A stretch of 64,000 nucleotides of DNA, taken from NCBI RefSeq assembly GCF_964204645.1, contig NC_134030.1, positions 11,863,947-11,927,946 of the forward strand, written 5' to 3'. Below are positions 37,500-52,029 of this stretch, piece by piece. Source of the stretch: Tubulanus polymorphus. Its lineage: Eukaryota; Animalia; Nemertea. The translations under genes were made by a program, and so were the position numbers. The notes below the pieces were generated by a model that was given only the letters and a program-made list of their open reading frames with translations, searched no databases and had not been told where the DNA came from. Position 1 is the first letter of the stretch. Each line of letters opens with the position of its first letter.

Positions 37500-39527
37500 T
37501 ATGCCTATGGAACGCTGGGTCAAAGAATCCCAAGTTGGCTAAAAACCAATAATGACTCACCACAATCATAGAACCAAGTAAAAGGGTTAATGTTTGTCAC
37601 CTGTACCAGGCCTATTTATGATAGGAAGTGGTTATTTTGCCGGATCCGGTCATTGACTTCTGAACGATATTTTGCCGGATATCGTCTCAAATTGGCGGTA
37701 TGACTGCAGTTTAGGTGTCCCTAATGGTTATGTACCTAACCTTACCATAACACTATTCTTTAATAACACTATGGCCACCCCCCTAGTCAGTAACCTGTCT
37801 GTGGTTTAGTTTCACAATCGGATATTTTCACAAACCACAGTCAGGAATGGGAAGGTCATTTTTGTATGAAATCTTCGTCAGCCAATTTGACTGACGAGTA
37901 ATTTGCCTGGCATTTCATTGTCTCTTAAGATATCCGTCTATTTTTTGTTGTAATCGACGCACAACAGATTCGTAGTTTGTCTGATACCTATAACACCTCA
38001 CCTGACGATCTTAATCCATGTGCAAATCGGCCGTAAAGTGAGAGTAAATTTCCGTCGGGTCAACAGCTGCCATTTTGAAAATTACTGGAGGTGCTGGCAC
38101 CTGTGGACTGAGGCGAGGACAACAGCACAAACTAACGAAGCGAAACGACGAAATTGAAAAAAATTAAGAAATCAACACTTATTCACATTTTTCTTTTACC
38201 AGAATTTATTATTTCATTATTTATTATGGAAAACACGAAGATTTGAAATATAAGTTGGAAAACCATCAAAAATAAAAATTGTCGTTTCGTCTCGGAAGTT
38301 TTATATAAATCCTTGTAGGTCCCCTTGTCTTATCATGCCACATGTGCAATACAGAGAAATGGCGGCCAATGGCGAAATTGGTGGAGAAATTAATTAATTT
38401 CTCAAAATAATGTTGACTAACCACTCGAAACATACATAAAATTGGATTATTTCGAAAGGTACCTGTGTTAGTTTGTGAATTAAGCCATTAATTGTGGACT
38501 GAAGTGAATAGAAAGTATACTTTTGAAGTGTTACTTTTTTCAACCGTGTTTTGGTCCTTGTCATCCCTAACGTTGGTATAAGCCCATCCGATTATAAAAA
38601 GCTTACCACCAACGATTAGGTAACTAACTAGCCACCCCCCCCCCCCCCCCAGTGGATAGGTGACCCAAACCTGTAGTAAACTAGTAGTAGTATAGTTAGT
38701 TTTTAATCAATTCTAAATTATTAGAAACTTTCTGCGTACCGTACCTAGAAACTGATTTTGTAAGAACTGGATTTTCCTGAAGCCAGTATGAATATTTACG
38801 TAGAATCACGTCCATCGTGGTTCCGTCCTGGCCTTCTTTTTAATTAAAATTGCTTGGCATAGGCGCCTACAGTAGGCCTATTTCGCTGGTGAAGTAAGAA
38901 CGAGAGAACCGTTCACTGACATGAGGCGTTGATTCCATTTATCGATTTATCACAACTACTAAAGTGGTTTCGAATCCCGCGACGGCGACCCTCGCAAATA
39001 AAATCTGGATCGGTAAAGTCAGTCACCGTGGTGGTGGTGGTGGTGGGTAATTTTAAGCCTTGGGCACAAAAAGTGTCAACAGTCAAGCCAAGGCGCGTCA
39101 TTAAACTTTCGTGTAGCCTACGTTTTCTTTTTTTTTTTGAAGCGGCTCGCCTGCACGCCGTAGTTGATTGCAGGCACGATATTCAATAGGTGAAGGTAGT
39201 AAAAATGGTCTCGAATGCAATATTATTCATCATCCTTAACTGGCTCACGGAAGCCCTTAGCCTTAGGCTAGTAGGTAACATAGAGAAGAGAGAGGCCTAC
39301 GCGATAATTTTTTTACAATTTCGACTTATTATCTCGAAATTCAACAGAGGCTTATAAGTCGAATTTCGACTTAATAAGTCGAAAATTGTAAAAAGGGCTC
39401 CCGTCTTAGGCTCTTATAACATTTTTGGTTTTTAGGCGCGAGTGATTTTTCGGTGAGTGTTGCATGCAACGCATGAATGGTGCGCGTGCACACTTCCGGT
39501 GTGGAGAGCCGACCCCGTGTATCAAAC

Positions 39528-39571
39528 GCAAAAGGTTGAAAGCCTGTTTTGGTCGATGGCGAGTGACGTCA
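39528..39571 (+). repeat. Left TIR of the MULE
   Basis: GCAAAAGGTTGAAAGCCTGTTTTGGTCGATGGCGAGTGACGTCA. Confidence 0.95.
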
Positions 39572-40230
39572 CTAGTACAAATTCCGAGCGGTTCGAATCC
39601 CACAATACGCCAAAATCACTACGGCCGCTCTGAGCGCACATCGCATTTCAACGTTGCCGTTTAATAATTGTAAAATAACTAATAATAGTTTAAGTTTTAT
39701 AAGGGTTAGAAGTACATTGTATTTACTGCTAGTGTATGTATATATCATGTACGGTTGCGAGAAATCCCTGCCCTGGTTAAACAGTAAGTCCACTAAATCT
39801 TTAAATTTTAAGTTGTTTAATGAAACTATTATTGTTTTAAATTGTTAAAACTGCAAACTATGGTTGTCGAAGATGCACCTTCTTCACATCCTTTGAAATC
39901 CTGGATAGCATCGCTGTCGGCAAAGACCTTCAGGTCTGTCTTCAACGGCACATCGCTTTGGAACAAGCGACTACTGTGTTATCAAATCTGAACTAGGTAA
40001 AAAAATGTTCCCCAAAAATAAAGACAAGTAAACGGATTAATTTGAGGTTTGAATGTTTTTGTTTATTTGTTGGTTCAAATCGAACCCTCGTCATCCTGAT
40101 CTCCATAAATCTAAGAAAAGTATTCGCACACTTAAAACAATAAAATACGAGCAATAAGCAATAACATCAGACTGGAGTAAGTAACTTTACTTAATTCACA
40201 GATACAATCCTACACAAAACAATAGCTATT

Positions 40231-40471
40231 CAGTGGCGGATCCACCCCTCTATTTTTACCGATGTAGCCGCAAATCTATGCGTTACTGAGTAAAAACCGA
40301 ATGAAATCTTTCTATTAAGTAATGCTCAGAATGCACCTGCTTGCATCTATTTTTCCAAAAAATTTTTAGGAAGGGTCTTCGCGTTATCGGTGCTTGCTCT
40401 GGAATGGCTTACAGCCATCTGTTGTTGCTTTCATTTGCCCCCCCCCCTTCAAAATGCTGGATCCGCCCCTG
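40231..40471. mobile_element. Small CAG-terminated MITE nested in the MULE
   Basis: CAGTGGCGGATCC...GGATCCGCCCCTG termini; no TSD recognised. Confidence 0.5.
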
Positions 40472-40489
40472 AGTGCAGACAAAATGATC

Positions 40490-41150
40490 GACAAAGACAT
40501 ACAGAACTCTAAAACAACAGTTAACAATTTAAGCAACGATAGACAAAACAGATAGCTGATTACTTTACAAACCTGTTGTCAGAACCTTAATTATTTTTAC
40601 ATGTACATACAGAGGACTGTTAACAATTCAACCAATGAAATTGCGATAGAGATACAGAACATACAGCTTTAACAGTAAACAATGCAACCAATGAAATTGC
40701 GATAGAGATACAGAACATACAGCTTTAACAGTAAACCATGCAACCAATGAATTGCGATTAACTAAGACCTACGAGCAATTATCAAGTTTGATAATTGCTC
40801 GTAGCTAAGACATACAGGACAAACAGGACTAACTTAATTGCGATAGACATACAGGACATACAGGATTAACAGTAGACAATTCAACCAACGAATTGCGATT
40901 AACTAAGACATACAGGACTAAACCACAGGACATACAGGACTAACAGTAGACAATTCAACAACCAATGAATTGCGATTAACTAAGACATACAGGACATACA
41001 GGACTAACTTAATTGCGATAGACATACAGGACTAACAGTAAACAATGCAACCAATGAATTGCGATCGCGATCACAAAGACATACAGGACAAACAGGAATA
41101 AACCACAGTAAATTGCGATAAAAAAGACATACAGGACTAACTGCAATAAA
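40490..41150. repeat. Degenerate modular tandem array downstream of the MULE ORF
   Basis: Shuffled modules AGACATACAGGAC, TAACAGTA(G/A)ACAAT and CAACCAATGAATTGCGAT, each repeated several times. Confidence 0.8.
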
Positions 41151-41919
41151 TATATAGGGCCTTAGGAATGCAAAATTCATTCATTTTGTCATTTGTAAAC
41201 ATTCCACAACTTATTTCATTATGTCATTTCCAGTTTTCAAAGGGAATTTTCTTAACTTCAGATGCCTCGAGGACATAAACATATAGAAAGATCTGTCCCA
41301 AAAAAATGTCAAGTGTCTTTCATAGTGCAATGGGCCCTGGTTTCCACGTTTATATATCACATATAAAATTCTACAGAAACAATCAATGAATAAGTGAAAA
41401 TTTACGAATAACAAACAAGACATTCAAGCAGTTGAGTAAGTTAAAATGGGACCAATCTATATATATTATATATGGATTATACAATTTAATCAGGGACAGC
41501 CTTGAACCGAGGTTGATGTGTCCATACACTCTCTTCATACACTCTCTGAACATGCATGTATGTATACTGCTGCCAATTGATGATAAGTCAAGGATGTTGA
41601 AGTTCTAGACATGGTCAGAATCATCCAGAGACATCGGCACGCATCACAATAACTGATGATTTTGCAGTAACCTGTAACATAAAAAATCAAGCGGTAATCT
41701 ATTCACAAAATATATTTTCCTGAAAGAAAAAACCTGAAATAGAGCACTATAAACACCAGTGCATATACATCGCTTCTTAACCTTATATATAATCGAGTAA
41801 ATATATAGGTGACTAAGTGACGGTCATTATAGGCTTCTACGTTCACCATGGGAAATGAAAATATTTCTAATGTCAGGGATTCATTCGAAACCCGATCAAT
41901 AATATTCTATACAAACTAT

Positions 41920-44900
41920 TTAGGAAATCGGGTCACAATGAAAACAAAACCACCTGATATGTTCAGGAGGAGCCTCATTGATTGGAGCACATTTCCAATG
42001 ATACCATCTATGGCAATTATCACATTCAATTGAGAATGTGGACTTTTTCTTAGGATTAGCATTGCATTTTTTGTGGCAGACAGGGCAGGTTTCAGCAACT
42101 AACTGAGAAGGGGTTTTTTCAACTTTTGATGACAAAAGATTATCTAGTTTCAATTTTGCTAGGTTTTGGAGGCCTGCATTTCCAGGTTGATCTATAAGAA
42201 TTTCTAATTCTTTTTCAGAATTGGAATTATTGATTTCTGTAATAGGAGAACTGTTGAGATAATCATCTCTATTATTATAATCGATTACAATAGATTTTTT
42301 CTTATGATGATTATGTTCAATACGAATGTGCTTTTGAAGGAATGTTTCACTTGCATATGAATTAATAACCCCATCTGCCCAACAAATAGCACATGAGATA
42401 GGTTTCAAAGATGAATGAGAAGTGGATATGTGCCTATCTAGTTCCCTGCGACATGAACAAAGATATGGAGGATTTATTTTGTCTTTAATACAAAAGGAAC
42501 AGACAATACTTTTTTCAAATAAAACAGACTTCGAGTCATTTTTAACAACTGGTATTGACTTAATATCTTTTGGTTTGGTATCTTTTGATTTTTTTGGTAA
42601 GGATGATTTATTCTGACTTAAAATATCTGCTGAAAATTCGATATCATTGCCAGGATCTGGATCAGTGGAGTCTATGGTTTCAATTTCTGATATTTTAGCT
42701 TTTTTACCTAGTTTGATAGCAGCATTTTCAACCATAGCAGAAAAGGATACACCTCTGTTAGCAGGTCTAATTATCTTTCGCCCTCCGTGTCTTGCATTCT
42801 CAGCATCTTTAGGCATTGTAACCTTAGGGCAGTAAGGGTCTATCACTTCAAGTTCAGGAAGGTTTATGGCAACCTGATTGTCCTTGATTGGACCCTCAGC
42901 ACGCCTATGAGCCATATTGTGAGGTTGTCGTTTGGCAGGTCGTCCGCTTATTAACTTAATTCCACAGTGGCTTTCATTATGTAAAATACTTAGAATGTGC
43001 CCTTTCCGAGCAGCATTGATATCATTCGAGCTAGCAATGTGGGAATGATCTTTTAACTTATCAATGAGGGTAGATGAAACAGAAATATTTTGTCGAGTAA
43101 AATTGTAAGTTGGCAGAGGCTCCACAATGTGGAATTTATATGCATCAATTAAAGCCTTCGTTGTGGTTATATTGTTTTTTTGGGCAAAACAGGCAAAAAG
43201 ATGTTTGCAAAAATATGGTTGTCCAATCATTATAAAAGCTTCACAAGTACATATACCTAGTTTCAAATTGATTAAATGGCAATTACCATCTACGTATGAA
43301 AGACAATTTTCAGGAACGATTGTAATAACGTAATTGAATAAGATACGACTGGATATTGAATCTAAATTTCCTATGTACCTTCGGCATTTTTTTGAAATGT
43401 CATATGAATGTTCCTCGGATATTGATACTTTATCGGGGAATCTTTCTTCTAAAACATCAAGCTGATTGAATGTATATTGAGTATCACCATTGAAAAAATT
43501 ATCATTATCTTCTAACCTATTTAAGTTCTTTCGTGAAGAACTCTTCACAACAAACCAATTAGTTTCTTCATCATATTTTAAAATCTCATTATTCTGTAAT
43601 AAATCAAAGGCTCTTTTGCAACACTTTTCTATCTTTTCAAGGTGACGTATATTCTTAACTCGTTGGTCAAGTTGCTTAAATTGGAGATTGTTCATATTTG
43701 TCGCTTTGATCTCATCATTAAAAACATTTTCAAACAGTAATCGTACAAAAGATGATATCAGTTTATTTAGGTGTCCACTTAAGTAGACATCATCTATTTG
43801 TTTGAATTTGCGCTCAGTAATATTATCAGTTAATAGCAAAGGGTTATTTCTGTTAGATTGGTCTGACTGATAAATTGATTCAGCATTGAATGCCCCAGAC
43901 CAAATTTGGGAATTAAACCAATTCTTCTTTAGGTAATCAATAAATAATGTTTTTGTATCTTGCGACATAAGGTCTAAAGAAATATCATTCTCAATAAAAC
44001 TAATAAATGAATTGGCTATATCAGTTCTAGAGGAAGCATCCCATGATCTCATAATGCATTTGAAACCAGTTTCTAGAGGCTTGCAAAATAAGCGAAGTTC
44101 TTGATTTTCATTCATGAAGCGACGAATACACTGCAGGACATGAAAATTACATAGTACTGATTTAAGATTATTGTCAGATGCTCCTTGCTTTAGACTTGCA
44201 TCTTTATCATGTTGTACAAAAGGACAAAATCTAGATGTTGATGAACATGGCTTGATTCTGAAAAAACCATTGCCATCATTAAATATATAGAATTCAGATG
44301 GATGATTACATTTTTCGTCTTTACATGGTGTATTGGCTAGAACTAACTGGATGGTAGTTGCATGAGTAGCCCCCCCTTCATCACTACTAATTGATGCAGC
44401 AGCAATACGTCCTTCATTTTTGTTGTCTGCAAAAGTTACAAATGAAGTTTTGAATTTCCACGAATTGAAATCATGTTTCACGTCAATACCAATGACAGAT
44501 TGTCCAAAGTTGGATAAATGTTCCAGAGAACGAGGATCAGAGAGAATAATGTGATAATTACGTTTGAGTGTGGCATCCCCTCGTTGAAATAAAAGGACAG
44601 ATTCATAGTTACCCTCTAATAATTTTTCAGTATTTCTCCAATCAGAACTTAGAATAGGTATTTCGTCTTGAGATTTCATATGTAATTTTATCGAAGATTT
44701 ATCAATATATTTCAATCTATTTGAAATTTGATCTAGGGTATGGTCATGACCGGCGCCATCATTTACATTTGATACATGAAGGTTATTGTGAGCATTGGTG
44801 GCAGAAAGAACCTTCATTGCTGTGGCTTTCATCATGACTCTATTTTCATCCCATCTATCTCTAGTAGATAAATTAGGTCGCTTTTTAATTTGTAAAGGAA

Positions 44901-47656
44901 TATTGTCATGATATTGACCATTAAGTGGTTTGCTGAAGATTCTCCACTTGGATAAATCAGTACTAAATAATACAAGTTTCGTTGCCCAATAACACATAAA
45001 ATGAGGGTGAATTAATTTTTTTGGCTCAAACTGCTGCCTTAACTTCACAGGACGATCACGTTTATTCTTCAGCTTATAGTTGTAACAGTTGGAACAAAGT
45101 GTTTCACCATCAGCATTTTTCCTCCATTTGTTAGACATGGTAATGGAGCAATGAATACATTGTTTATCATTTAAAACAACGTCAATTTGACATGAGGGAC
45201 AATTAGTGATGTTACTGGACATATTCAACTTTGAAAGATAATATCCACATGATGATTTACAAACTGAAGACTTTGACGAACATTTTATGAGCATTTCTGC
45301 AGCCACAAATTGAGAAGTATCCTCAACAATTGGCTCAATAAATTCAAATTTATTATCTAATCTATGGGTTTGCCAATTCTTTTTTAATGTTAAGGAAGCT
45401 TTCATCGTTGTCTGGTTACCAACAAATGAAGGCCGCACATTCTTATGCAGACGAACTGTTTTTGTAAAATCAAAAGTGAATCTATCGAAATAATATTTTG
45501 TGTCAGCACCAGTCATTACTTCCCCATTTTCAACCCATTCATCACTAAGTGGATTCTGGTTGTTGAGGTATTTCTTGATAGTGTCAATGGCTACCTGGTC
45601 ATTTGTACCTTGGTCTGTACAATGAAAACTTTTATACTTCGTCTTACTGCCAGTTGAATGAAAAGCAACTTCAAGATAATGCTTTCCTCTCCTGATGCGA
45701 TGGGAGATAGTAGTTTTAGAACCATTAATATGGGAAGTTAATGGTTCAGCTGAATTTAGAGTTAATGAGGATTGAGGATTCAAAATTGAGGATGTAGATT
45801 CAGGTGTAGATTCATTATTCGAAATTGGTGTAGATTCAGGTGTAGATTTAATAGTCAAAATTGGTGCAGATTCACTATTCGAAATTGGTGTAGATTCATT
45901 AGTCAAAATTGGTGCAGATTCACTATTCGAAATTGGTGTTGATTCAGGTGTTGATTCATTAGTCAAAATTGGTGCAGATTCACTATTTGAAATTGGTGTT
46001 GATTCATTAGTCAAAATTGCTGCAGATTCATAATTCGAAATTGGTGTAGATTCAAGTGTTGATTCATTATTCAAAATTGGTGTAGATTTAGATTTGGCTG
46101 TAGTTAAGACTGATTTGCTTTTTTTAGGGGCAATATAAGAGTCTGACATCTTTAATTCAGAACTAGCTAGTGTATTATTTGACTCAGTTGATCGTTTATG
46201 TCTCTGTCTGCGAGATAATCGTGATATCTTAGAGAAAGTAGTACTATTAGCAGTAGGTTGAGATGACTTTGAGAAGAGTTGAGTAATATCAATTAGATGT
46301 TTCATAAGCCAATTAATCAATATCAATCTAACAAAATCAGAATAGTTAGAAATGTTCTTAAGATAAGATAATTCATTGGGAGATGAAAATACACTTGAAA
46401 TATCCTTTTCATAATAGGTTGCAATGCAAGCACCAATTAATGTAGCAGGGCCACAGACAGATGAACATGATTGGAGTGGGTAATAACTAGTACAATTATT
46501 ACTACATACATGCACTGAATTTTCAGTAACAAAATGAGGATCATGGAGGTGGATATAAACAGGATCAGGGCAATTCAAACCTTTCAAAACAGATCTTAAA
46601 TGATTTTTAAATTCCCTTGGACAATCCCATGCTAGTGTATCAGCATAACACAGTTTGTTACTTTTTGGGTAAAAAACTGCTAGTGCATAATGATTGGCAA
46701 CAACATGTCCATAAGAATTTAGAAATACGAAATCGTTTTGGGTGCCAACATGCAGGAAAAAAATTAGTTTATCACAACTTATGAGTGGATTAGGACCGAA
46801 TCTTTTATATAAATTTGAAACATATTTCTTAGCATCAAATGTAAGTGGCATCATAAATGCATGAATATTACAGTACTGTTCATTTATCATAGATGCAAAA
46901 GCATTTAACACAGATCCTTCAAACCATTTTTGATTAGTCATCGTCTGAAGTTCTGATACAGATACGCTATTATTATTACCAACTGGAAATTGTTGAGAGG
47001 GTTTTAAGGAAAAGAGCATATTTGAAAATGCTTGAATCTGTTCCCAATCGACTGAATCAGTGGGGCTTAAAGGCTTACTATTTACCCAAAGATTCATGGC
47101 AAAAAGATCTTGTTGTTTGGTTTTAGCATAATGTAAGAAAAGAAACCTATTAATCTGATCAATAGAATAGCAGCCTGTATCGAGTCTCACATGGATATTA
47201 ATGGAAGGGTCACGGACAATCCTTGACTGCATCTGTGCTTTTATGTCCTCCAACTGATTTTTGTGGGGCATAGTGGGGGCATCATCAGCCAAATGACATG
47301 AATTAGACATGTCACAAATTCTGAATGACGTGACCTTTGATGGCATAACAGGAGGAATTTTCAAAAACTGATAGTCATTGAGGCACATTTCTGTTGGATT
47401 GTAACTAAAATTTCTTCTACATACATGTTCATCATCAGAATCATTCTCATCACTATCATCAATTATGATTGGTTCGATACCTCCACCACCTGTGATACTT
47501 AGCTGTTTTTTGTTTTCCATCCAGCTATCTTCCTGCATCTTTAATCTTTCTATCCTTTCTTTCGAACTATCTTCCTGCATCTTTTCTGCTTCCTCTATCG
47601 TTCCTTCCGAGAAATTGTCACAAGCCGCGTCCTTTCCTTCTTCCTCCATTGTCCGC
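41920..47656 (-). CDS. Giant terminal exon of the MULE transposase gene: Ulp1/C48-like protease, S/T/P repeats, GATA finger, MULE DDE core, SWIM, two C2H2 fingers, PHD finger
   Basis: Uninterrupted ORF 47667-41920 (1915 aa). Ulp1: WFEGSVLNAF, NHYAL, YADTL, LQSCSSVCG. GATA: CIHC-x17-CSNC...KNKRDRP. DDE: GIDVKH, QHDKD, LCNFH, TDNITE. SWIM: CTCEAF...CKHL. C2H2: CSFC...HISTSH and CAIC...HIRIEH. PHD: CPVC...ECDNCHRWYHWKC...WFCFHC. TTTCAG acceptor ending at 47657. Confidence 0.92.
45780..46090 (-). repeat. In-frame coding minisatellite (24-bp units alternating STPISNSE and SAPILTNE)
   Basis: Visible in both the DNA and the translated ORF; includes 12-bp STPE insertions. Confidence 0.9.
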
Positions 47657-47817
47657 CTGAAATACACATTATCAACTCACTTTTTTTAGACATATGAATA
47701 GATAGAGTATGAAATTACCCATATAGGCCTAACATAAAACATGGGTATCTCTGAGTCATTTGCATTAAGTCATTTAGATTTGTAGGTACTAAATTAATTG
47801 AATTATGTTGTACTTAC

Positions 47818-49613
47818 ATTTCAGTATGGTTTAAACTAACATGGTCTAGAAGATCTTTCCAATTGGTGAATTCAACTCCGCAAAAACATGTCGAGTCAGC
47901 AGGATCCGTCTGTGGATGAATAACCTAATGTGGAAGAGCACATTAATCTGTTTTTGCTTCAACATCTAAGCAAAAATAACAAAAATGAACCCGCGTCTCG
48001 CAGAAAGGGCATCAAACTTACATGTTCCACTGACTTCCTTTTTCTGTTAAATCTTTTAGTATTGTGACAACTTCTATTGTAGCATCCCTGAATATGAAAA
48101 CAAAGCTTTACAGCATAAATCATACCAATACCAATGAATTTCTATAATTTCATTTCGAGAAACATATTACTCACGTTCTTAGTCTGATAAAAAGGAGTAA
48201 ATAATTGAGGCTTTAAACAAATAGCAACACCAGCCACATCAATTTTAGTCATGTACTGGAAAAAAAAGACAGATTTGTGCATGCACAGCCTTTAGGTAAT
48301 TGTGAAATAAAAGTGACCAAACTAATATTAAATCATAAGTTCTTGAGATGATATGTACCTGGTCGAATGTGAAAAAGGCTCTTTGATCTTCACAACAGAA
48401 TTGTTTCCTTGTATGATGCGCAACGTCAAAACTGCTATACTGGATTGAAGGATACAAAAAACTGTTAAAATATATCTAACTTTATAAAGATAAATCACGT
48501 ACAAATCACTTAGGAAAACAACTTTACCACTATTGTTGAATCATCCCATGCTCTTGCTTGATCATCCTTCAATTTGTTTTTTGCTATCAGCTATCAATAT
48601 GATTCATTAATTCAATGCAAGGATTTTGAATAAAGTGGTTTCGTATTCAAGTTATAAAAACTAATTGCAAATCATTCATTTTCTAGGATATCAATGCTAA
48701 ATGATTACCTTTCGTCGATGGACTGCTCTACTTCTTTGCATCTTTTCAATCTCATATGGAAAGTATTGAGGGCACCTGATTAAGAATCATTCATTATTTC
48801 CAGTACAATCATAAAATTTATGTAGTTTGCATACCTGGTAATTGGATAAAATAATGCAATTCTACGTACATTTCATCTTCATTTTTCAATAGCAGTAGTT
48901 CCATTATCCTGTTATTTATGAACTGATTTCCCTTACGGCTGGGGTGTAACAAGTCAGTCCTAGATCACAAAATTTAGAAAAAAACAAGTTAGTTTAAATC
49001 GCGAAAAAATGCACATAACCTACTGGGCTTATTAAGATTAAACGATTACTTACGGTGAAAGGAGATCTCTTGAGAAGTGAAAATCAACGAACTTTACACC
49101 AAGTGTAAAGCATTCGCGGTGCAGCATTTCATTGTAATGAAATATTTTTGTGTCAGCATCGAAACTTTAAAAAAGAAAGAAATTTAAAAATCATTACATC
49201 GATCATAAATATAGTACTTCAAGAAAAATCTATTCTTGATACTTACTCATCACATCGAGGAAAAAGAGCTGGTACAATGATGGTCCCAGTACATTTATAG
49301 AGCAACAATCGAATTAATTCAACGTGTCTTCGCAGAACAATCTCAAGCGGGACATCACGCGTCATATTATTTGTTCCAACATGGACGATTAGTTGTTCCA
49401 CATTCAGCATCTTCACCTTTTTCAATTCTGTAATATACAACTAATCAGTAACCCAATGAAAATGAACAATATAAATCAGTACTGAACCGAGAAATTACCT
49501 TCCATCAATGTTTCAATGGTTCCTCCGGGGCACACGATCCTTGTCCATTCAAATAAGCCTACACCATCTAGCCCAGCATACTTTAAAATGCTGTCTGCTA
49601 CGAGACCAATACG
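47818..49613 (-). CDS. Ten short upstream exons of the MULE gene encoding an SGNH/GDSL hydrolase domain, a linker and a C2H2-like finger
   Basis: Exons 49613-49499, 49427-49247, 49164-49054, 48959-48870, 48775-48709, 48590-48528, 48439-48359, 48255-48175, 48087-48022, 47924-47818, all GT-AG and phase-matched. Motifs GLVADS, CPGG, HVGTNN, DLLHPSRKG, and CFCG..F.....L..H....H. The four SGNH exons are well supported; some linker junctions have alternatives. The start-codon exon was not identified. Confidence 0.78.
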
Positions 49614-51245
49614 CTACAAAAAAGATTATTTGTCAGTCTCAGGCCAATATCACAGGGAGGTGTGAGAGAGCACACTGGTTACTGTAAGACCCTACTACAT
49701 GCAAAAGAAGTGACACATATATGTATATCAATGTGATAGAATTGATTGAAAAAATTGTGCATAATAGTAGCTAGTGCCCAAAAATAGAACACAGTGTTAT
49801 TGAAGTGAAAATTTCTAAAATCCTCTGAAGCGGTGCTTATTTGGTAGCTACATGGGTATTCTAATTGAATAAGCATAAAGATAAGCGTGCACACACAGTA
49901 GCCTATGCATAAACAAGGGCCAGTTTCACCTTCACCTAAAAGTCCTGCAGTGTGAAGACTAACTTGTTCACCTAAACCACCTCTACCAGGCTGTGGAAGG
50001 CCTAACATCAGGCACTAAATTAAAAGATTCCTCTAAATCAAATTATCTATAAACATCCTCTTAATTGCAGGCAGACTGATTCAGGGAGGGGTGCAGCCCA
50101 AAATAGGGCATACATATCAGTATCATATATAATTAAAAATCAAAAGGGCACCAGATCATCAGAAAACATAATACCTATATTTTGGAAGTAGGCCTACAGA
50201 GAACATGTTTTGGAATATAAGCTTTTTAAAAATACTTGTTGATATTTTTAATTTTTCCTTTAAATTTCATTGCGACTTAAAAGTTTTAAGGGGTGTACAC
50301 CCCTGTATACTCTCCTGATCTGCCCCTGAATTGCCACTTAACAAAATTTCTCAGCTTAATTGTTGGCTAACTAGCTCAGTGAAACTGGGACCAGACCTAA
50401 TGCATACACCCTCAGTGGCCAGGGCCAGGATTAAACAGTTAGGCTACGTATATAAATAAAGGAATGAAAAGTACTTATCCTGAAATTGGTTAGGCTATCT
50501 ATCTGCAACAAGAAATACATTTTCATTGACTCTGAATACAGGGAACTACCATTCTTCTGTTTCGAGGCCTTAAAATTTATTGTTTATTTTTTGTTGCTGG
50601 ATTTGGAATGGTTGTTGGAATATTTAAGGCCTAGTAGGTGGTGACTGTGTACGGGCAACATAGGCCTATACCCAGTGGCATGGCAATGGCATGCCACTGG
50701 GTACCCACTACTGCACTATAGTATACTGCCTACGGCTACTGCGACTGGTGGTTCGGTTGGCAGAAATTACTTTTTAACATGGGGGGGGGAGGGGGGAAGT
50801 AAGCGTGGATGAAGACAAATTAATTTAGCCGAGTAAGTAGCAAGCAAGTAAAGTAGTGGCAGTACAGTAGGCCTAGCGACAATGTGAGTGTGGTGGTAAC
50901 GTGGCCGTGGTGGCAATAACAAGACTCCAAAACTGGCAAAAGCCAAAATTAAAAAGCCCTGCCGCCGCGCGGTCGCGACGCCTCGCCTGCACCACCGTGT
51001 ACGATCCTCGCGGCGTTCACCAGTGTTACCCAGTGAGTTTTTTATAATCTTGCAATCTACCTCTTTTTTCAAACCAATATTCCCACCAACTGGTCCGGAG
51101 ACAAGCTTAACACGTTCGGAAAACATGATTCACAATCTTTTAATCAACAGCCAGCAAGAATACACTTGACAGAAAATTCAAATTCAGCGGTTAACCGTTA
51201 AAAGTGAGTTGTTTAGCTGTGGGAGTAACAAAAAGGCGATCTTGA

Positions 51246-51289
51246 TGACGTCACTAGCCATCGACCAAAACAGGCTTTCAACCTTTTGC
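51246..51289 (-). repeat. Right TIR of the MULE
   Basis: TGACGTCACTAGCCATCGACCAAAACAGGCTTTCAACCTTTTGC (one mismatch to the left TIR). Confidence 0.95.
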
Positions 51290-52029
51290 GTATCAAACCG
51301 TATCAGGCGCGCGGTTTCGCAGTCAGTCCAGCGTGGTGAGAGCGCCTCGACAACCTAAAGGTCAGTGGTATATAGATAGGAGCGGCCCGCGCCCCCATTA
51401 ATTTTTGCCAAGATAACATTTCCAGGGCCATTTTGAAAATGATATGGCCAACCCGTCGGAACCCTGTACCGGCTGTACGTAGTCGTAGTCGTAGACGTAA
51501 GTGTAGCGTTTCTCTCCTGGGTAGCGTGTTTCTTTTTAGTGTTGGATACGTAAAATAGGCGTTTGCTACTAGGGTTCGCCCTGAAACAATATAATCGGGT
51601 TATACGAAAATATTGGGGGAAGTAATTCCTCCTCAGGGAAAAGATACATTATGAGAATGCCGGTTTGCTAGCGTATCTATTTAACACCCGTATTGCTCGG
51701 GTTAGTTTTACTATCAACGGGTGGCGCTGTATGTAAATTTCACATAAATCAACGACTTTCGGCTATTGGCGGTACTTAAGACCACTTGAAAACATCATAG
51801 TCAATTACGGTAGTAGTGAACATAAAAAGATACAGTACAAAGATACAGTACGGTGTACAGTTAAGGACATGATTCCATAGGACCCATACCAGAGACATTT
51901 TGTTCAGACAAGGACTATTAGTTAAACACTAATCTTCATTTTCAGCAATTAACGATCTGGTGAATTAATTAGTGATTCGGTCTTTCGTCGGTTCGAGATA
52001 AAATGCCCGCAAAATAAGAACCTAACGAA

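Follow-up and report, generated by a model that had tools for sequence, protein, structure and literature searches.

One of the questions raised by a 64,000-nucleotide stretch of the genome of the nemertean Tubulanus polymorphus (assembly GCF_964204645.1, contig NC_134030.1, positions 11,863,947 to 11,927,946; hereafter the window, whose own numbering is used throughout) relates to how a Mutator-like transposase, an SGNH esterase and an Ulp1-like protease come to be predicted within a single protein. Is this one gene, does it belong to a mobile element, and what would such an element do with an esterase? The proposal that the three are fused by splicing came from a sequence-only reading of the window. 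The answer favoured here is that positions 39528-51289 are an intact copy of a young, autonomous cut-and-paste transposon of the Mutator superfamily (a Mutator-like element, MULE, of the MuDR type) and that it carries the fused gene. We regard this as very probable, the grade being a single one for the element, the fused gene and the roles of the domains taken together. The ends of the element, its target-site duplications, copy number and splicing, and the homology of each domain, are demonstrated below, and beyond these we infer what the domains do.

Fundamental to this answer is the element itself, which is 11,762 bp in length and whose ends, at 39528 and 51289, were placed by comparing seven copies. 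It is bounded by terminal inverted repeats of 44 nt. The left one (39528-39571, plus strand) starts GCAAAAGG and stands where the homology between copies begins, and the right one (51246-51289, minus strand) was located by inverted-repeat comparison as well as by the comparison of copies. The pair is 92% complementary and the repeats are identical in all copies read. Immediately outside them lie the two halves of a 9-bp target-site duplication, GTATCAAAC at 39519-39527 and the identical 9-mer after the right end at 51290-51298, the latter from the copy comparison. Such duplications flank all three copies for which both ends were read (3/3), and the 9-mer differs from copy to copy. Target-site duplications in the Mutator/MULE superfamily are about 9 bp, with a range of 8-11. 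The gene had been predicted to lie inside terminal inverted repeats, and this is where it is found. At least 12 copies at 99.8-100% identity over the parts compared are spread over many chromosomes, and the full open frame is present in seven of the near-identical copies; truncated and decayed copies of the element also occur in the genome. The near-identical dispersed copies suggest recent activity, with excision and reinsertion of the element. Between the inverted repeats no reverse transcriptase or endonuclease was found, either by Pfam on the open reading frame (ORF) or in the ORF listing. A copy of 90% identity on contig C3 was considered as a test of selection and rejected: its exons (5.6%) and introns (4.8%) have diverged to an equal degree and it contains stops, which marks it as a decaying copy, uninformative about selection.

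How is the gene put together? A minus-strand ORF of 1915 aa is present at 41920-47667, and most of it belongs to the last and largest exon (41920-47656, 5737 nt, stop codon at 41922-41920), which codes for the Ulp1-like domain, a repeat linker, a GATA finger, the DDE core, a SWIM motif, two C2H2 fingers and a PHD finger. Ten small exons precede it on the same strand. Exons 1-4 (48870-49613: 49613-49499, 49427-49247, 49164-49054 and 48959-48870) carry the SGNH hydrolase domain, exons 5-9 (48022-48775: 48775-48709, 48590-48528, 48439-48359, 48255-48175 and 48087-48022) form a linker between the SGNH module and a C2H2 finger, and exon 10 (47818-47924) holds that finger (Pfam zf-C2H2 E 0.04), its donor leading to the large exon over a 161-nt intron. 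When joined by script, the ten exons and the large exon give one open frame of 6699 nt, with GT-AG at each junction, agreeing phases and intron lengths of 71, 82, 94, 94, 118, 88, 103, 87, 97 and 161 nt. The script was used for the frame and for comparison with one RefSeq protein (P0002); for homology the exons were searched singly and the joined product was examined through the RefSeq proteins P0002, P0004 and P0164.

The splicing can be followed in sequencing runs. A search of such runs returned four from one study that contain the element (X1-X4), none of them recorded as RNA, and their contigs were compared with 45400-51289. In this region the contigs of X1-X3 have none of the predicted splice joints. 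Those of X4 excise all ten predicted introns exactly, with the acceptor at 47656 joined to 47818, the shorter side measuring only 24-30 letters at several joints; they add two upstream introns, 49614-49935 and 50015-50474, and X4 has intron-retaining contigs as well. In a search of the assembly, the close matches to exon 2 all sit in open frames of only 62-66 aa, and an intronless genomic copy therefore does not explain the joined contigs. The 1915-aa ORF is 100% identical to RefSeq proteins of T. polymorphus. One of these, XP_074643861.1 (P0002, isoform X1, 2196 aa), corresponds to the predicted model from residue 37 to the end with zero differences, which indicates that the NCBI pipeline reached the same splice model, and P0002 as well as P0005 agrees with the joined model completely or almost completely. 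The ten-exon chain of the sequence-only reading, with its intron lengths and phases, thus holds by script, by X4 and by XP_074643861.1, and the check that it had suggested, across 47818/47656 and the SGNH junctions, finds all ten joints in X4 contigs.

The 5' end is where the original model needs revision. It had taken 49613 as the coding 5' end of a protein of at least 2232 aa, and the 6699-nt open frame stands; the end point does not. An in-frame TAG lies directly before 49613, both in the genomic sequence and at the end of the upstream X4 exon at 49936-50014, and the first in-frame ATG in X4-type transcripts is Met37, which explains the 2196-aa RefSeq isoform. The predicted true start is a further exon, here called exon 0 (51061-51126, read on the minus strand from 51126 to 51061), which consists of an ATG plus 21 codons (66 nt) with a phase-0 GT donor and which would give a protein of 2254 aa with a complete SGNH domain. 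A sister family of the element on contig C7 has an ATG, exactly 21 codons and a phase-0 GT donor at 50% identity to exon 0 within surrounding DNA that cannot be aligned, and RefSeq XP_074649046.1 (P0164), from another copy, joins exon 0 directly to exon 1. The nucleophile serine block is included in the RefSeq models P0164, P0004 and P0166 and excluded from the 2196-aa isoform and X4 transcripts.

Alternative 5' exons, likewise on the minus strand, are also used. That at 49936-50014 (X4 joints 49613/49936 and 50014/50475) is non-coding with respect to the main frame and ends in the in-frame TAG; an ATG within it, in another frame, opens an upstream frame of approximately 50 codons that ends within exon 1, and RefSeq XP_074651601.1 starts at this upstream ATG and shifts to the main frame by a different splice. 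Another, at 50475-50502, has two acceptors 4 nt apart (50502 and 50498) and is joined in X4 to an exon outside the copy on contig C8. This 5'-most X4 exon is not in the window and adjoins the C8 copy externally (G000:C8:10710727-10710752), and at least that X4 transcript is consequently a host-element chimera. RefSeq XP_074657053.1 is a 215-aa chimeric esterase from the same copy, with GTND in place of GTNN in SGNH block III. X4 contigs also exit the element at 47821 (the exon 10 donor) and at 51203 (86 nt inside the right end); their continuations match once each on contig C2 (532880; 26103987), away from the copies listed, and may reflect insertions missing from the assembly, partial copies or transcripts of chimeric origin.

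What is the evidence that the leading module is an esterase? Exon by exon, Pfam detects a weak SGNH signal in exon 2 only. In the RefSeq products of the element PF13472 (Lipase_GDSL_2) reaches 39.2 bits for P0004 and 35.0 bits for P0164 against a cut-off of 32.9, and the 2196-aa isoform starting at Met37 falls slightly below it at 32.5 bits. For P0164 the Atlas model finds GDSL clusters at TM 0.72-0.76. The four catalytic blocks expected to hold Ser, Gly, Asn and Asp-x-x-His are intact in the element as ADS, CPGG, GTNN and DLLH, the C8 copy having GTND as its third, and they are kept in the C7 family. Among PDB sequences the module touches just two, both weakly: the OSK domain at E 0.03 and 4C1B (ZfL2-1 ORF1p) at E 0.16. 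Judged on these similarities, what exons 0-4 appear to encode is a complete SGNH/GDSL-type hydrolase, closest to the ORF1 esterases of long interspersed nuclear elements (LINEs) and to the OSK domain. In protein sequence the C7 family and the present one are approximately 58% identical; every catalytic block, the phases of the exons and exon 0 have been retained in both, with introns that cannot be aligned, and this combination argues for purifying selection on the SGNH coding sequence.

The origin of the module is less easily traced. The genome yielded no host paralogue of the SGNH exons, every close match to exon 2 belonging to this element or its sister family. A search of long proteins for an SGNH N-terminus returned only this element, and a search with the 215-aa esterase product returned Tubulanus copies only. 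The genome also holds more than 100 intronless PF13472 matches. At the loci examined (L037-L041, for instance L038:289-3692, minus strand) these are LINE ORF1 proteins, in which a CCHC knuckle, or a DnaJ-like part with a PHD part, is followed by a C-terminal SGNH esterase, and after ORF1 comes an ORF for an endonuclease-reverse transcriptase. Compared with the esterase of the element, those of the LINEs in this genome are 20-29% identical, too little for a recent transfer from LINE to element, which is thereby excluded; an old one is conceivable. Two candidates were discarded along the way: P0161, taken for a divergent esterase, is an alternative splice form, and contig C4 has, 14.5 kb upstream of a MULE ORF, an SGNH-like stretch that was not counted, since it lacks introns and is probably part of a LINE.

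The esterase has a narrower distribution than the rest of the protein. In Tubulanus itself, SGNH exons 0-5 and 8-10 still stand ahead of the ORF in the C7 family, exons 6-7 being unmatched, and a degenerate copy on contig C10 retains the order SGNH-like exon, protease, DDE, its esterase match being weak (E 1.2e-4). A third Tubulanus family (1787-aa ORF, contig C6) has no SGNH exon within 9 kb upstream. Relatives of 1,700-2,250 aa, all annotated as uncharacterized, occur in the limpet Patella caerulea (KAK6186404.1, several copies), in crustaceans (the mantis shrimp Oratosquilla oratoria and two crabs, Scylla/Portunus) and in marine ENA contigs. They share with the element the Ulp1-like, GATA, DDE, SWIM and PHD parts in the same order at 30-42% identity, and differ from it in lacking both the SGNH module and the N-terminal C2H2 exon set; the limpet gene shows no recognisable SGNH exon within 10 kb upstream. 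On the comparisons available, then, the esterase belongs to a sub-lineage, within which it is seen to be conserved. In the C7 copy (L014+L015, G000:C7:9325300-9338300) the Ulp1-like segment has undergone a 1.6-kb tandem duplication, and the ORF match ends at about residue 940, short of the DDE core.

The protease assignment comes from profile and fold. The Ulp1/SENP-like domain (C48, clan CE) spans ORF aa 149-489 (46201-47223, minus strand), with H326, D343, Q399 and C405 as the candidate catalytic residues. A ten-member family profile finds Ulp1 1EUV at E 2.6e-6 and next SENP1/2, with SENP1 at about 1e-4, the top twelve matches being Ulp1/SENP without exception. The predicted structure (pLDDT 76.5) gives Ulp1/SENP at 2.4e-8 in Foldseek, with all of the top 32 matches belonging to Ulp1/SENP/NEDP1. 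The catalytic spacing is that of Ulp1, with 17 residues from His to Asp and 6 from Gln to Cys, and in the alignment of the ten members His and Asp are invariant and the catalytic Cys is replaced in two members only. One relative, P0022 (an ENA contig, 2251 aa), has two Ulp1-like domains in tandem.

The catalytic core that would mediate transposition occupies ORF aa 1020-1380 (43528-44610, minus strand). A close-family profile compared with PF10551-positive ORFs of the same genome gives an hhalign E of 1.4e-5 (probability 80%), and the alignment pairs D1062, D1154, C1173-x2-H1176 and E1285 with the corresponding residues of MULE transposases. The model of the core (pLDDT 86.8) has ten listed Atlas fold matches, all of them MULE clusters, at TM 0.47-0.62 (nine at 0.56-0.62); language-model features from the same Atlas score 0.95 to MULE/SWIM clusters. 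The best fold in the PDB is the IS256-family ISCth4 transposase (E about 1e-4), and the DDE profile run against PDB sequences found nothing. An exhaustive search with ORF residues 900-1600 collected 139 relatives, and the distant ones score 18-23 bits with Pfam MULE, below the cut-off of 27.6, and exceed the threshold for SWIM. Between the first and second catalytic Asp, at ORF aa ~1115-1141 (44200-44330), there is a Cys-Cys-His-Cys set (PC...C.HP...C) that is invariant in the family of large proteins and missing from ordinary MULE ORFs of the same genome; it may represent an extra zinc-binding insertion in the core.

Around the two enzymatic domains of the large exon are the linker and fingers, all on the minus strand. 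A Ser/Thr/Pro-rich tandem repeat linker with a 24-nt unit, seen in the translation and by repeat search, lies at 45803-46088. It is followed by a GATA-type zinc finger of the form C-x2-C-x17-C-x2-C (ORF aa 837-863, 45079-45159; Pfam PF00320 E 0.0027, the finger of the limpet homologue reaching E 6.6e-6), and then, beyond the DDE core, by a SWIM-type CxC...CxH motif recognised as a pattern in the translation (ORF aa 1473-1489, 43201-43251), a label that UniRef also gives to a crab homologue. Two C2H2-type fingers with C-x2-C...H-x4-H patterns and a weak Pfam signal (ORF aa 1723-1785, 42313-42501) precede the PHD finger close to the C-terminus (ORF aa 1861-1911, 41935-42087; PF00628 24.1-25.5 bits, cut-off 24). 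On the 1915-aa ORF Pfam reports PHD, a weak GATA and nothing else. The domain order put forward from the sequence, SGNH, C2H2, Ulp1/C48, S/T/P repeats, GATA, MULE DDE, SWIM, two C2H2 and PHD, is supported by Pfam, profiles, folds and motif patterns combined, SWIM by its pattern.

A number of observations pull the other way and have to be weighed against the idea of an active element with a fused, three-enzyme protein. Pfam MULE (PF10551) gives no match on this protein even at E 10, and neither Peptidase_C48 (PF02902) nor SWIM scores on it; of the Pfam families that had been expected at the outset, SGNH and PHD come out above cut-off, GATA is weak and the other three are absent. Twenty-four other chains with identical intron lengths are also open, which makes the open chain alone weak evidence. 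X4, from which the joints come, is not on record as RNA, and no joint of exon 0 to exon 1 is listed among its contigs. Moreover, Met37, past SGNH blocks I and II, is the start both in the X4 transcripts and in the most frequent of the RefSeq isoforms (2196 aa), and a product with this start would lack the nucleophile serine; the three catalytic activities once claimed for the protein are for this reason unproven. Part at least of the X4 signal derives from the C8 copy, whose transcription begins in a flanking exon, which leaves expression driven by the element itself only putative. Finally, the SGNH module is not needed by the wider family, since the limpet and crustacean relatives and the third Tubulanus family are without it.

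The working model that best accommodates these data is of a single minus-strand gene with 12 coding exons, in which exon 0 and exons 1-4 would supply the SGNH domain, exons 5-10 the linker and C2H2 finger, and the last exon the remainder. In this model the DDE core would cut and paste the element, making the 9-bp duplications in the process, and the zinc fingers and PHD finger would target DNA and chromatin. The protease would act on SUMO or ubiquitin-like conjugates in transposition, as has been proposed for other Ulp1-bearing transposons, and the esterase would be an accessory function that selection maintains. Through alternative 5' exons and retained introns, esterase-only, N-terminally shortened and host-element chimeric products would be made as well.

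Could such products be the rule, so that the esterase and the transposase are separate proteins? RefSeq includes esterase-only products of 118-268 aa (P0004, P0006, P0160 and P0164), ended by intron retention or an alternative exon, together with a 1995-aa isoform X2 that begins in exon 8, and the intron-retaining contigs of X4 point in the same direction. It is conceivable, if unlikely, that the SGNH-C2H2 exons mainly yield a separate small accessory protein, comparable to the second gene of a MuDR-type element, with the transposase translated for the most part from an ATG of its own (47649 or the Met of exon 8) and the fused mRNA being minor or non-productive. The isoforms cannot be ranked from contigs, however, and exons 1-10 each keep the phase required for fusion. 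In addition, the joint of the exon 10 donor to 47656 is present in X4 at a depth similar to that of neighbouring joints, and the C7 family has the same exon order ahead of its large ORF.

A second alternative derives the SGNH exons from a host gene, a fragment of which was captured by Pack-MULE-style transduplication and would now serve only as a 5' leader or dispensable N-terminal extension, with a functionless esterase. MULEs are on record as capturing host gene fragments (PMC6431247), the many short introns resemble those of a cellular gene, the serine block is omitted from the commonest modelled isoform, and the relatives from other phyla have no SGNH module. This is nevertheless improbable: the exon 2 matches described above lead back to the element or its sister family and to no host parent, two families at ~58% identity keep the blocks, phases and exon 0, which is a signature of purifying selection, and the element encodes an intact transposase and is autonomous, not a Pack-MULE. 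That the locus is a domesticated host gene derived from a transposase and no longer mobile is scarcely credible, for although NCBI annotates copies as ordinary loci with several isoforms and the DNA- and chromatin-reader domains would also fit a regulator, near-identical copies, a dozen or more, are scattered over many chromosomes, each bounded by terminal inverted repeats and a 9-bp duplication of its own, and decayed and truncated copies exist besides.

If the fused gene is accepted, what might it mean? We would tentatively suggest, as an idea that is more speculative than the element itself, that in one lineage of cut-and-paste Mutator elements the transposase acquired an SGNH esterase of the LINE-ORF1/OSK type, which selection has since maintained as an active domain at its N-terminus. 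Were this true, class I and class II elements would have taken up the same accessory chemistry independently of each other, a sign that a lipid- or acyl-dependent step is shared in the way the proteins of mobile elements are brought to their substrate. What the esterase does in LINE ORF1 has been an open question for two decades, and a young multi-copy element with intact copies offers a second, mechanistically unrelated system in which to ask it, the intact element being directly usable for activity testing. The element further strengthens the case that large Mutator transposases of animals repeatedly have SUMO/ubiquitin-like proteases and chromatin readers as partners; in the genomes of nemerteans, molluscs and crustaceans, proteins of this kind have no annotation beyond 'uncharacterized'.

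Of the remainder of the element, the 2.4-kb 3' part is non-coding, there being no ORF of more than 73 aa in 39528-41919, and it contains subterminal tandem repeats with units of 56 and 77 nt at 40622-40995.

How, then, does the element compare with systems that are already known? The kinship of IS256 and eukaryotic Mutator transposases is accepted. In keeping with this, ISCth4 of the IS256 family (PDB 6XGX/6XG8) is the best solved match of the DDE core, but at a TM of only 0.28-0.40. The bacterial enzymes of this family are also without the Cys/His insertion, SWIM motif, protease, esterase and reader domains present in the element. In LINEs the esterase is part of ORF1 in an element that also has an endonuclease and a reverse transcriptase, and in 2003 Kapitonov and Jurka reportedly described esterase and PHD domains for ORF1 proteins of the CR1-like kind. 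The ORF1 esterases of the CR1/L2/RTE groups (ZfL2-1 ORF1p, PDB 4C1B) and the OSK domain of Oskar have the SGNH fold in common with the module found here. Unlike the LINE esterases, that of the element is split by introns, resides in a DNA transposon with no reverse transcriptase and is fused to a transposase. SGNH/GDSL hydrolases have travelled with other mobile elements too, as in the SGNH gene captured by a Helitron in platyfish (PMC4021074) and the GDSL esterases of rotifer LTR elements and Terminons (PMC6431247, PMC5718144); these differ in being a captured passenger gene or a part of a retroelement, none of them being fused to a DDE cut-and-paste transposase.

The closest counterparts are MuDR-type transposons with Ulp1 domains, which are known from hydra, lancelet and plants and some of which have a PHD finger (PMC2836005). 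These families (Hydra and Branchiostoma entries in Repbase; KI-MULE, VANDAL and CUMULE in plants; as summarised in PMC2836005) share with the element the terminal inverted repeats, 9-bp duplications and MULE-type DDE core, and they likewise have a clan CE Ulp1-like protease and a PHD finger in the same element or protein. The element differs from them in placing the protease N-terminal to the DDE core in one polypeptide with the SGNH domain spliced in front, no esterase being reported for the Ulp1-bearing families; the distinction from the Repbase entries is drawn from their descriptions. Among the papers searched, none links SGNH with a Mutator-like transposase, and the fused protein is already in RefSeq under the name 'uncharacterized'. 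The suggestion that this is an undescribed lineage therefore holds for the SGNH-MULE fusion and not for the remainder: Ulp1-bearing MULEs of animals, and the combination of protease, transposase and PHD finger, were known before (PMC2836005), and it is the addition of the SGNH hydrolase that is new.

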